Positions 18,665-53,340 of a DNA stretch of 64,000 nt are shown in pieces (positions within the stretch are counted from its first letter, which is position 1; the number at the start of each line of letters is the position of its first letter). The notes below the pieces were generated by a model that saw only the letters and a list, made by a program, of their open reading frames with translations, did not search any database and was not told where the DNA came from. This stretch comes from Octopus sinensis. Its lineage: Eukaryota. The position numbers and the translations under genes are program-made. Location of the stretch: contig NC_043019.1 in the NCBI RefSeq assembly GCF_006345805.1, positions 12,709,360 through 12,773,359 of the forward strand, read 5' to 3'.

Positions 18665-18773
18665 CAAGGTTTTCTGTCATAATGGTTGCTTCCGTAGCAT
18701 TTTCAATCTTTGTAGCCACGTTTTCTCCATAATTCTCCAAAGTCTTCAATAATGATGTCGCTGAAGTCTCTTT
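18665..18773 (-). CDS. aGPCR-like gene exon 13 (last visible): GAIN domain (KETSATSLLKTLENYGENVATKI...IMTENLG)
   Basis: Acceptor ttttcctcag|AAA and donor G|gtatga. Phase 0 to 1. A..LL..LE helix and T.NL strand typical of the GAIN A/B transition. Confidence 0.85.
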
Positions 18774-19261
18774 CTGAGGAAAAAAAAAGAAGAGAAAGAA
18801 GATATTATTATTATATTATTATTATTATTATTATTATTATTATTATTATGATGATGATGATGATGATGATGATGATGATGATGATGGTGGTGGTGGTGGT
18901 GGTGGTGGTGGTGGTGAGATGGCAGAATCGTTAGCACGCCGGGCGAAATTCTTAGCGGTATTTCGTCTGCCGCTACGCTCTGAGTTCAAATTCCGCCGAG
19001 GTCGACTTTGCCTTTCATCCTTTCGGGGTCGATAAATTAAGTACCAGTGAAACACTGGGGTCGATGTAATATCGATTGCCCCCTCTCCTCCAAATTTCAG
19101 GCCTTGTGCCTCCTGTGGAAATGATGATGATGATGATGATGATGATGATGATGATGATGATGATGATGAAGAAGACGAAGAAGAAGAAGAAGAGAAGAAG
19201 AAGAAGAAGAAGAAGAAGAAGAAGAAGAAGAAGAAGAAGAAGAAGAAGAAATGATAGCTAC

Positions 19262-19333
19262 CTTTTTGTTCATAGTCTCCCAGTTTTGTTTCCGTTTAGG
19301 GGCCAAAATATTGTCTACAGCTTCGAAAAATTG
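19262..19333 (-). CDS. aGPCR-like gene exon 12: GAIN subdomain A (QFFEAVDNILAPKRKQNWETMNKK)
   Basis: Acceptor ttcttttccag|CAA and donor AAG|gtagct. V.NIL......W motif. Phase 0 to 0. Confidence 0.88.
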
Positions 19334-49900: not shown

Positions 49901-52900
49901 GTATGTGCTACTGTTTAATATATTTGTAACTTCAGTTGTCACATAGCTTTCATTAGTCACTGAAGGCGAAGTGTTTGTGTTACTGTGTAACATGAGTGTA
50001 ACGTTTGTTGTCCTATTACTATTGCTTGTTGCGGGAGTGGAAATGTATGTGCTACTGTTTAATATATTTGTAACTTCAGTTGTCACATAGCTTTCGTTAG
50101 TCACTGAAGGCGGAGTGTTTGTGTTACTGTGTAACATGACTGTAACGTTTGTTGTCCTATTACTATTGCTTGTTGCAGGAGTGGAAATGTATGTGCTACT
50201 GTTTAATATATTTGTAACTTCAGTTGTCACATAGCTTTCGTTAGTCACTGAAGGCGAAGTGTTTGTGTTACTGTGTAACATGAGTGTAACGTTTGTTGTC
50301 CTATTACTATTGCTTGTTGCGGGAGTGGAAATGTATGTGCTACTGTTTAATATATTTGTAACATCAGTTGTCACATAGCTTTCGTTAGTCACTGAAGGCG
50401 GAGTGTTTGAGTTACTGTGTAACATGAGTGTAACGTTTGTTGTCCTATTACTATTGCTTGTTGCAGGAGTGGAAATGTATGTGCTACTGTTTAATATATT
50501 TGTAACTTCAGTTGTCACATAGCTTTCGTTAGTCACTGAAGGCGAAGTGTTTGTGTTATTGTGTAACATGAGTGTAACGTTTGTTGTCCTATTACTATTG
50601 CTTGTTGCAGGAGTGGAAATGTATGTGCTACTGTTTAATATATTTGTAACTTCAGTTGTCACATAGCTTTCGTTAGTCACTGAAGGCGGAGTGTTTGTGT
50701 TACTGTGTAACATGAGTGTAACGTTTGTTGTGCTATTACTATTGCTTGTTGCGGGAGTGGAAATGTATGTGCTACTGTTTAATATATTTGTAACTTCAGT
50801 TGTCACATAGCTTTCGTTAGTCACTGAAGGCGAAGTGTTTGTGTACTGTGTAACATGAGTGTAACGTTTGTTGTCCTATTACTATTGCTTGTTGCGGAGT
50901 GGAAATGTATGTGCTACTGTTTAATATATTTGTAACTTCAGTTGTCACATAGCTTTCGTTAGTCACTGAAGGCGGAGTGTTTGTGTTACTGTGTAACATG
51001 AGTGTAACGTTTTTGTCCTATTACTATTGCTTGTTGCGGGAGTGGAAAGTATGTGCTACTGTTAATATATTTGTAACTTCAGTTGTCACATAGCTTTCGT
51101 TAGTCACTGAAGGCGGAGTGTTTGTGTTACTGTGTAACATGACTGTACGTTTGTTGTCCTATTACTATTGCTTGTTGCGGGAGTGGAATGTATGTGCTAC
51201 TGTTTAATATATTGTAACTTCAGTTGTCACATAGCTTTCGTTAGTCACTGAAGGCGGAGTGTTTGTGTTACTGTGTAACATGAGTGTAACGTTTGTTGTC
51301 CTATACTATTGCTTGTTGCAGGAGTGGAAATGTATGTGCTACTGTTTAATATATTTGTAACTTCAGTTGTCACATAGCTTTTATTAGTCACTGAAGGCGA
51401 AGTGTTTGTGTTACTGTGTAACATGAGTGTAACGTTTGTTGTCCTATTACTATTGCTTGTTGCAGGAGTGGAAATGTATGTGCTACTGTTTAATATATTT
51501 GTAACTTCAGTTGTCACATAGCTTTCGTTAGTCACTGAAGGCGGAGTGTTTGAGTTACTGTGTAACATGAGTGTAACGTTTGTTGTCCTATTACTATTGC
51601 TTGTTGCAGGAGTGGAAATGTATGTGCTACTGTTTAATATATTTGTAACTTCAGTTGTCACATAGCTTTCGTTAGTCACTGAAGGCGGAGTGTTTGTGTT
51701 ACTGTGTAACATGAGTGTAACGTTTGTTGTCCTATTACTATTGCTTGTTGCGGGAGTCGAAATGTATATGCTACTGTTTAATATATTTGTAACTTCAGTT
51801 GTCACATAGCTTTCGTTAGTCACTGAAGGCGGAGTGTTTGTGTTACTGTGTAACATGACTGTAACGTTTGTTGTCCTATTACTATTGTTTGTTGCAGGAG
51901 TGGAAATGTATGTGCTACTGTTTAATATATTTGTAACTTCAGTTGTCACATCGGTTTTTCTTGTTACTGAAGTGGTTATGTCTGTGCTATTGTCAGTGTT
52001 ATTGTTTAACGTACCTGTAACGGTTGTGACATAGCTTTCGCTTGCTACAGAAGTGGGAATATCTGAGTTACCTGTGATTTCTACATCCGTTGTGACACCA
52101 TTTTCTGTTATTACAGAAGTTGCACCGTCTGCGTTACCCGTGGTTTCTACAATATCTGTTGTCACACCATTTTCTGTTGTTACAGAAGTTGTAAAGTTTG
52201 CGTTACTCGTGGTTTCTACAACATCTGTTGTCACACCATTTTCTGTTGTTACAGAAGTTGTAAAGTTTGCGTTACCCGTGGTTTCTACAACATCTGTTGT
52301 CACACCATTTTCTGTTGTTACAGAAGTTGTAAAGTTTGCGTTACTCGTGGTTTCTACAACATCTGTTGTCACACCATTTTCTGTTGTTACAGAAGTTGTA
52401 AAGTTTGCGTTACTCGTGGTTTCTGAAACATCTGTTGTTACACCATTTTCTGTTGTTACATAAGTTGTAAAGTTTGCGTTACTCGTGGTTTCTACAACAT
52501 CTGTTGTCACACCATTTTCTGTTGTTGCAGAAGTTGTAAAGTTTGCGTTACTCGTGGTTTCTACAACATCTGTTGTCACACCATTTTCTGTTGTTACAGA
52601 AGTTGTAAAGTTTGCGTTACTCGTGGTTTCTGAAACATCTGTTGTCACACCATTTTCTGTTGTTACAGAAGTTGTAATGTTTGCGTTACTCGTGGTTTCT
52701 ACAACATCTGTTGTCACACCATTTTCTGTTGTTACAGAAGTTGTAAAGTTTGCGTCACTCGTGGTTTCTACAACATCTGTTGTTACAGAAGTTGTAAAGT
52801 TTGCGTTACTCGTGGTTTCTGAAACATCTGTTGTCACACCATTTTCTGTTGTTACAGAAGTTGTAAAGTTTGCGTTACTCGTGGTTTCTGAAACATCTGT

Positions 52901-53340
52901 TGTCACACCATTTTCTGTTGTTACAGAAGTTGTAAAGTTTGCGTTACTCGTGGTTTCTACAACATCTGTTGTCACACCATTTTCTGTTGTTACAGACGTT
53001 GTAAAGTTTGCGTTACTCGGGGTTTCTACAACATCTGTTGTCACACCATTTTCTGTTGTTACAGAAGTTGTATTGTTTGCGTTACTCGGGGTTTCTGAAA
53101 CATCTGTTGTCACACCATTTTCTGTTGTTACAGAGGTTGTAATGTTTGCGTTACTCGTGGTTTCTACATCTGTTGTCACGCCATTTTCTGTTGTTACAGA
53201 AGTTGTAAAGATTTCGTTACTCGTGGTTTTTGTAACCTCTGTCGTCACATCATTTTGATATGTTACACTTGTGGTAAAGTTTGTATTATTTGCCGTAAAA
53301 AACGTGTCAGTGACATTGCTGGCTCTTATAGTGTTTTTAC
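46980..53340 (-). CDS. aGPCR-like gene exon 1 (first visible): giant Thr/Ser/Asn-rich stalk exon, ~2,124 aa after correcting net -11 nt of indels
   Basis: Acceptor tctcttacag|GT at 53342-53341. ORFs 51245-53371 and 46957-48843 are its two ends. The 3' boundary (donor A|gtatgt at 46979) is inferred. Confidence 0.8.
47380..51950 (-). repeat. Coding tandem array: 32 copies of a 144-bp (48-aa) unit
   Basis: CATGA(G/C)TGTA anchor counted at 47401, 47545 ... 51854, giving 32 copies. Confidence 0.97.
52100..53270 (-). repeat. Coding tandem array: ~16 copies of a 69-bp (23-aa) unit TSVTTENGVTTDVVETTSNANFT
   Basis: Visible in ORF 51245-53371; frame intact. Confidence 0.95.

Follow-up and report, generated by a model that had tools for sequence, protein, structure and literature searches.

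An adhesion G-protein-coupled receptor gene of Octopus sinensis, very probably split by an assembly gap, and a putative giant stalk at its 5' side

We analyzed a 64,000-nucleotide stretch of Octopus sinensis (contig NC_043019.1, positions 12,709,360 to 12,773,359, forward strand; below, the window), for which an earlier note had proposed an adhesion G-protein-coupled receptor (GPCR) ectodomain with a very long glycosylated stalk. Our data indicate that the window very probably holds the 5' part of one minus-strand adhesion-GPCR gene, orthologous to the Octopus vulgaris protein CAI9739306.1. It covers the first two thirds of the receptor gene and encodes, in this order, a mucin exon rich in proline, threonine and serine (PTS), a SEA domain, two Ig domains, HRM and subdomain A of GAIN. 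The GPCR proteolysis site (GPS) and the seven-transmembrane (7TM) region are found in the ortholog, and 7TM exons of O. sinensis on an unplaced contig. Upstream of the mucin exon lies a putative giant N-glycan stalk, the attachment of which to the receptor is weighed separately.

Exon model and domains of the ectodomain

A query with the open reading frames (ORFs) encoding Ig, HRM and GAIN subdomain A recovered two proteins, a 273-aa fragment from O. bimaculoides and O. sinensis XP_029650223.1 (LOC115223690, 484 aa, carrying the database label 'uncharacterized protein'), which served as reference model. XP_029650223.1 aligns to the minus strand of the window at 100% identity, and its exon borders were set by an AG/GT boundary search requiring the joined exons to translate exactly to the protein. 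The result is a chain of 11 minus-strand exons, with GT-AG ends at 10 of the 10 introns and consistent phases:

36866..36978, minus strand: SEA exon 1 (splice model and protein alignment; the NCBI model begins at an internal ATG, 36955)
35212..35261, minus strand: SEA exon 2 (splice model and protein alignment)
32351..32484, minus strand: SEA exon 3 (splice model; holds PG|SVVA)
30621..30863, minus strand: Ig domain 1 (splice model and Pfam scan)
28616..28807, minus strand: end of Ig domain 1 and first half of Ig domain 2 (splice model and Pfam scan)
25989..26117, minus strand: second half of Ig domain 2 (splice model and protein alignment)
24339..24440, minus strand: HRM exon 1 (Pfam and splice model)
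22217..22311, minus strand: HRM exon 2 (Pfam and splice model)
21246..21431, minus strand: GAIN subdomain A exon 1 (Pfam and splice model)
19262..19333, minus strand: GAIN subdomain A exon 2 (splice model and protein alignment)
18666..18773, minus strand: GAIN subdomain A exon 3, GAIN-A3 (splice model; phase-1 GT donor after 18666)

The earlier note had counted 13 GT-AG exons with matching phases. Eleven are confirmed via XP_029650223.1, while the gaps between the ORFs of the stalk turned out not to be introns. The outer ends given there, 18665 and 53340, do coincide with splice signals, namely the phase-1 GT donor after 18666 and an AG acceptor before 53340. The last exon of the NCBI model (18773-18615) ignores this donor and reads the intron until a stop after base 18615. 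Judged against the O. vulgaris protein, which continues with TENL|AVVV at this point, the read-through past the GAIN-A3 donor is wrong. Structure prediction of XP_029650223.1 by single-sequence AlphaFold2 reached a pLDDT of 33 and was unusable.

With regard to the individual domains, GAIN (PF16489) scores 53.7 bits in XP_029650223.1 (cut-off 26.5) over profile positions 4-113 of 210, the match in the window being the helical subdomain A only, and HRM (PF02793) reaches 27.9 bits versus a cut-off of 26.2. The Ig families score under the Pfam cut-offs in this protein, with clear Ig matches in relatives aligned over the same stretch; the relatives employed for the Ig and SEA comparisons align with XP_029650223.1 from residue ~6 to ~470. 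Similarly, SEA was not detected by Pfam in a scan of XP_029650223.1 alone, and four of the relatives scanned reach the SEA cut-off at the position matching the octopus segment. We also ran a profile of the octopus segment and nine mollusc relatives against solved structures, and it matched SEA domains of TMPRSS11-type proteins (2.8e-9), ADGRF1 (4.1e-6), and MUC1 and MUC16 (4-7e-3). The octopus segment moreover contains PG|SVVA, near the SEA self-cleavage motif, given as G|S[V/I]VV (PMC10687090). At the level of sequence profiles, the presence of a SEA domain is confirmed. Aggregated, the domains proposed earlier, SEA, Ig, Ig, HRM and GAIN subdomain A, are all recovered: GAIN and HRM above their Pfam cut-offs, SEA by profile and Ig clearly in relatives.

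The membrane part lies beyond an assembly gap

The 90%-identity cluster of XP_029650223.1 includes two informative proteins: CAI9739306.1 of O. vulgaris ('G protein-coupled receptor B1-like', 1425 aa), and XP_029654167.2 of O. sinensis ('ADGRB1-like, partial', 258 aa), a 7TM fragment on the unplaced contig VCDQ01010040.1 (11,110 bp). XP_029650223.1 is 95% and XP_029654167.2 97% identical to CAI9739306.1. The latter begins with PTS mucin repeats, continues through SEA, two Ig domains and HRM, and ends with full GAIN, GPS, a secretin-type 7TM (7tm_2) and a cytoplasmic tail. It matches GAIN with 86.8 bits over profile positions 4-209, and GPS (PF01825) with 51.8 bits, the site being CSCTHL|TNFAVLINPY. 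The 7tm_2 score is 140 bits in CAI9739306.1 and 137 bits in XP_029654167.2. The self-cleavage site HL|T appears canonical in the ortholog, where cleavage is predicted, and the TNFAVLINPY segment that follows would represent the tethered agonist.

The O. vulgaris gene shares the mucin exon and the exon order with the O. sinensis gene, with ~95% identity from SEA to GAIN subdomain A, and in addition has the GAIN subdomain B, GPS, 7TM and tail exons that the chromosome assembly of O. sinensis is without. To locate the break, we compared the window with an 86-kb O. vulgaris locus (L003; OX597836.1:13.23-13.33 Mb). The two are colinear from 52152 down to 13451, which is the exact edge of a run of undetermined bases:

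13351..13450, no strand: 100-N assembly gap, end of the contig carrying the gene (O. vulgaris colinearity stops exactly at 13451)

In O. vulgaris, the next exon, GAIN-B1, is located at L003:38409-38543, 747 bp past the gap edge, and is followed by GPS at ~50.8 kb, 7TM at 53.6-61.8 kb and the end of the gene at 76 kb. O. bimaculoides likewise has GAIN-B1, at a distance of 3.4 kb past GAIN-A3; the window does not contain this exon. Beyond the gap, no less than 38 kb of the receptor gene is missing, and part of the missing stretch is found on VCDQ01010040.1, where the O. sinensis 7TM exons are intact with open frames.

Two observations count against assigning the window to a receptor gene. A tblastn search with the orthologs found nothing similar to GAIN subdomain B, GPS or 7TM between 18665 and 1, and GPS and 7TM are seen solely in the ortholog and on the unplaced contig, with none within the window. 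However, given that colinearity ends at the N gap and that an unplaced contig carries the 7TM exons, the lack of GPS and 7TM in the window points to an assembly artefact rather than to biology. The receptor proposed in the earlier note hence stands, through GPS and 7tm_2 in an ortholog of ~95% identity.

Alternatively, the O. sinensis copy may be truly truncated or decaying, with real frameshifts and lost 3' exons, leaving at most a secreted 484-aa fragment of SEA-Ig-Ig-HRM-GAIN subdomain A. Such decay would accommodate the 14 stalk indels and the mucin exon's net -1 shift (both described below), the NCBI model that ends by reading through a donor, and the GAIN subdomain B, GPS and 7TM exons not found in the window. 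We nevertheless consider it highly improbable: colinearity stops precisely at the 100-N gap and not at a rearrangement, open-frame 7TM exons are retained elsewhere in the same assembly, and the confirmed exons differ from O. vulgaris by 0.8% substitutions and zero indels. Furthermore, almost every stalk indel is a deletion of one base, and the indels cluster in two patches of near-identical repeats, the pattern of an unpolished long-read consensus, and from general knowledge of the GAIN fold, subdomain A would be unlikely to fold without subdomain B.

The mucin exon and the region upstream of it

Having placed the receptor gene on the minus strand up to the gap, we turn to its N-terminal side, where the following features precede SEA:

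39022..40274, minus strand: PTS mucin exon with 22/33-aa repeats (serine plus threonine 50%, proline 11%; phase 1 at both ends; in CAI9739306.1, aa 1-414)
39177-40207, minus strand: 66/99-bp tandem array, ~15 copies, inside the mucin exon
45057..45198, minus strand: candidate small exon, 'mid ORF A' (phase-1 acceptor, phase-2 donor)

The junction from mucin to SEA in CAI9739306.1 is of phase 1 (TITP|EPHKTLQ), and in O. bimaculoides the exon for the N-terminal part of SEA lies within an upstream 407-aa gene model. In the window the mucin exon measures 1253 nt, one base under a multiple of 3, with a net -1 frameshift versus O. vulgaris near 39170-39190. The O. vulgaris mucin exon is a single frame of 505 aa (L003:~9900-11100), versus ~418 aa in O. 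sinensis.

Between the stalk and the mucin exon, mid ORF A alone cannot join the mucin exon in frame; its alignment to O. vulgaris shows one short indel, whose 12 gapped positions are divisible by 3. A second frame in the same interval, mid ORF B (44640-44903, minus strand), shows zero differences from O. vulgaris over 261 bp, a length for which the intron baseline predicts ~3 substitutions plus indels. Its phase-2 acceptor would fit the phase-2 donor of mid ORF A, and mid ORF B could be an unannotated exon.

A putative giant stalk

Further upstream, the window contains a long repetitive coding frame:

46980..53340, minus strand: putative giant stalk exon (from ORFs, frames and composition; phase-1 acceptor at 53340, phase-1 donors at 46980 or 47040)
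52083..53256, minus strand: 69-bp (23-aa) tandem array, ~17 copies, inside the stalk exon
47334..51951, minus strand: 144-bp (48-aa) tandem array, 32 copies at 97% identity, inside the stalk exon

Once indels are allowed for, the exon comprises ~2,124 codons with phase 1 at both ends, and its composition is that of a heavily glycosylatable segment, with serine plus threonine at 41-42%, asparagine at 13-15% and at least 129 N-x-S/T sequons. The arrays of stalk and mucin are genuine tandem repeats, and all of their units (69, 144 and 66/99 bp) are multiples of 3. As read in the window, the stalk is split into four ORFs by 13 one-base deletions and one 2-bp insertion, clustering in two patches, 51304-50844 and 49763-48918. 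The possibility that the gaps between these ORFs are introns was rejected, the gaps being 144-bp repeat units with indels. The corresponding O. vulgaris region is a single open frame of 1,062 aa (L003:3-3188), running off the 5' end of the locus, and for this reason the O. sinensis indels are read as assembly errors. From this comparison, the indels of stalk and mucin exon are most likely consensus errors of the long-read assembly of O. sinensis.

The 144-bp array is in frame also in O. vulgaris, where it spans ~2.6 kb (L003:181-2814), with an estimated ~18 copies versus 32 in O. sinensis; the mucin array is conversely the longer one in O. vulgaris. These copy-number differences between the assemblies of sister species could represent true variable-number repeats or assembly collapse.

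Does the stalk belong to the receptor? The frame is open through unique junctions and a 190-aa unique tail in two species, and the phase-1 acceptor and donors of the stalk are compatible with the phase-1 mucin acceptor at 40274. In addition, CAI9739306.1 begins inside the mucin exon, and its start (MSSTTESTTV...), judged by inspection, is unlike a signal peptide, so upstream coding exons must exist. None of the receptor gene models carries a signal peptide.

Several points nonetheless weigh against a joint protein. In the NCBI annotation the stalk is divided between two genes, one of 755 aa (first exon 54248-54077 with the weak donor GTTCGG, plus 53340-51245) and one of 628 aa (48843-46957), and no gene model joins stalk and receptor among the O. 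sinensis and O. vulgaris models. A separate 104-aa upstream model in O. vulgaris ends 50 bp before CAI9739306.1. Long ORFs in tandem arrays with units that are multiples of 3 constitute weak evidence of coding, and the codon-position bias of the variants is merely suggestive, with 8 of 13 at third positions. The unique tail of the stalk diverges 1.7% from O. vulgaris, which is not below the intron baseline of 1.1%. Lastly, a crude scan of 53372-64000 found no signal-peptide exon.

Alternatively, the receptor may start at a 5' exon not seen here that splices to the mucin exon, in which case the 69-bp and 144-bp arrays would be either a gene of their own for a secreted glycoprotein or a non-coding minisatellite within the first intron. 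Congruent with this alternative are the two independent NCBI genes, the O. vulgaris 104-aa model, which spans >10 kb and hence skips the array, and the unique tail with no excess conservation. The units would also keep frames open automatically, and plus-strand ORFs of 136-257 aa are indeed present in the arrays. On the other hand, the stalk frame stays open across non-repetitive junctions and the unique tail in both species, its splice phases fit the mucin exon, and the 104-aa model, out of frame where it reaches the mucin exon, appears to be an artefact. The 755-aa model is problematic as well: it starts MSFTASPALSALLCTSA..., within sequence that by eye resembles a retroelement, and its first exon overlaps, in another frame, an ORF at 54025-54294 (within 53900-54350, minus strand) that by eye is like the GIY-YIG nuclease of a Penelope-like element, with no Pfam match. 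Due to this overlap, and next to the weak GTTCGG donor, the start codon of the 755-aa model is doubtful. We regard a receptor without the arrays as a serious contender, with a likelihood somewhat short of even.

The earlier note had placed the giant stalk on the same protein. Phase compatibility and the single frame in O. vulgaris speak for that part of its claim; the absence of a joining model and the two NCBI genes do not. For the stalk (53340-46980) being the distal stalk of the same receptor protein, we estimate a chance between slightly less than even and even. Accepting this attachment, the full proposal is a single receptor of ~3,550 aa, composed of a 2,100-aa N-glycan stalk, the PTS mucin, and SEA and GAIN as self-cleaving modules in series. 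Such a receptor would be the cephalopod equivalent of ADGRG4, evolved independently around an ADGRL/D-like 7TM, and would serve as a very long tether to sense shear or contact. We hold this proposal tentatively, as approaching but not reaching an even chance. The total is estimated from exon lengths, and a signal-peptide exon would be extra and outside the window. A homolog search with a composite query of stalk, mucin and the neighboring ADAMTS-like sequence gave no match, its 8,000 candidates being dominated by low-complexity words.

Relatives and classification

An exhaustive HMMER search with XP_029650223.1 returned 175 proteins (E <= 0.001). Those matching best over the full length, with identities of 22-30%, are mollusc adhesion GPCRs, of Mytilus, Patella, Haliotis, Littorina, Sinanodonta, Pecten and Argonauta, along with one nemertean, named 'ADGRB1-like', 'ADGRL3-like' or 'uncharacterized' by NCBI. 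When scanned with Pfam, 8 of 13 relatives contain 7tm_2, and most of the remainder look like truncated or partial models. The core common to the relatives is (SEA)-Ig-Ig-HRM-GAIN-GPS-7TM. Receptors of Littorina saxatilis (XP_070189464.1), Patella vulgata (XP_055954372.1), Mytilus californianus (XP_052089256.1) and Haliotis rubra (XP_046546561.1) share this domain core and align end to end with XP_029650223.1. The mollusc relatives differ at the N-terminus, where EGF, SRCR, cadherin or fn3 domains replace the repeat stalk and serine plus threonine amount to 15-23%; among 12 relatives with N-terminal parts examined, none has an S/T-rich stalk of the octopus size.

Family placement was assessed by ranking bit scores against solved structures, rather than by a tree, with ADGRF5 not among the matches. 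GAIN plus 7TM of CAI9739306.1 scores 239 bits against ADGRL3, 199 against ADGRD1 and 142 against ADGRF1, and the 7TM alone 170 (ADGRL3), 158 (ADGRD1), 106 (ADGRF1) and 102 bits (ADGRG4). In rank order, ADGRL3, ADGRD1, ADGRL2, ADGRG6 and ADGRE5 are all above ADGRF1. By these scores, the GAIN-7TM part resembles ADGRL/ADGRD more closely than ADGRF. ADGRL3 is the best solved-structure match to GAIN-7TM, and ADGRL3, ADGRB2 and ADGRB3 all match the HRM-GAIN module; these matches explain why NCBI names the relatives 'B1-like' or 'L3-like'. The octopus gene is however without the lectin and olfactomedin domains of ADGRL and without the TSP1 of ADGRB, having SEA and Ig instead.

The layout had previously been compared with that of ADGRF5/GPR116. 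As in the octopus gene, SEA is followed by Ig repeats ahead of GAIN in ADGRF5/GPR116 and ADGRF1, and one protein with ADGRF3_N, SEA and Ig aligns to residues 6-342 of XP_029650223.1. The ADGRF3_N domain was not found in the octopus gene. The shared SEA-Ig order therefore remains of the earlier comparison, whereas kinship does not, in light of the ADGRL3 and ADGRF1 scores above: the likeness to ADGRF5 appears to be one of layout only.

A closer vertebrate parallel is offered by the stalk-SEA-HRM-GAIN order of ADGRG4/GPR112, in which a mucin-like stalk of ~2,000 aa precedes SEA, HRM, GAIN and 7TM; it has an extracellular region of >2,700 aa and a proposed role as shear-force sensor (PMC10687090). 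ADGRG4 differs from the octopus gene in having an N-terminal pentraxin, in lacking Ig and in a SEA from which the G|S[V/I]VV motif is missing. No pentraxin match was obtained in the ORFs and gene models scanned with Pfam. The resemblance to ADGRG4 is probably convergent. Adhesion GPCRs outside all vertebrate subfamilies have been described in invertebrates, including O. bimaculoides (Scholz et al. 2019, PMC6900090). For the lophotrochozoan SEA-Ig-Ig-HRM-GAIN receptor group, we found no dedicated literature.

Proposed mechanism

Drawing on what is known of the adhesion-GPCR family, a possible sequence of events can be outlined. The receptor would be cut at HL|T in GAIN, and possibly also at PG|SVVA in SEA, resulting in a mature heterodimer, the fragments of which would remain paired at the cell surface. 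The long glycosylated N-terminal fragment may then act as a stiff tether, with matrix, a partner cell or flowing fluid as its anchor. Force or ligand on the Ig or stalk end would displace this fragment or alter its shape, such that the tethered agonist TNFAVLINPY is freed, switching on the 7TM and the G protein.

Neighboring elements

The window is rich in short interspersed elements and microsatellites. Below the N gap, an ADAMTS-like gene (671-12969, minus strand) displays TSP1, Cys-rich, spacer and further TSP1 exons; its NCBI model of 487 aa has matches to ADAMTS_CR_3, ADAMTS_spacer1 and TSP1_ADAMTS. No metalloprotease exons were seen in it, so that an ADAMTSL- or papilin-type gene is a possibility. 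These exons were considered as part of the receptor gene and rejected, as they are beyond the N gap, form a separate NCBI gene and are absent from the 86-kb O. vulgaris locus. The ADAMTS-like gene is a neighbor through scaffolding.

At the other end of the window, a LINE (non-long-terminal-repeat retrotransposon; 57700-63100, minus strand) matches Exo_endo_phos with 47 bits and RVT_1 with 77 bits. An upstream 673-aa ORF with no Pfam match is possibly its ORF1, and GC content reaches up to 57%. Mariner/Mos1-type transposase fragments are found at 30111-30515 (plus strand) and 8132-8503 (minus strand), with HTH_48 at 74 and 85 bits, and a third such fragment, at 3491-3736 (minus strand), was recognized by eye. 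An inverted repeat with arms of ~270 bp (14870-15140 and 15440-15710) marks where the O. bimaculoides locus ceases matching the window. The element, 14870-15710, is also present in O. vulgaris, where the region aligns, has a relative near 11960-12080, and is probably a transposon with terminal inverted repeats.

Significance

The O. sinensis gene is already public, though fragmented and mislabelled, being split over at least four entries: the 755-aa and 628-aa models (the putative stalk), the 484-aa LOC115223690 and the partial 258-aa XP_029654167.2. In practical terms, this work mainly corrects the gene model and locates the break in the assembly. The general understanding of how adhesion GPCRs function is unchanged by these findings. 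Within the Lophotrochozoa, the gene falls into a group of SEA-Ig-Ig-HRM-GAIN receptors. If the stalk is truly part of the protein, the giant mucin-stalk design, on which arguments for mechanosensing in vertebrates have drawn, would have been invented independently in this gene.

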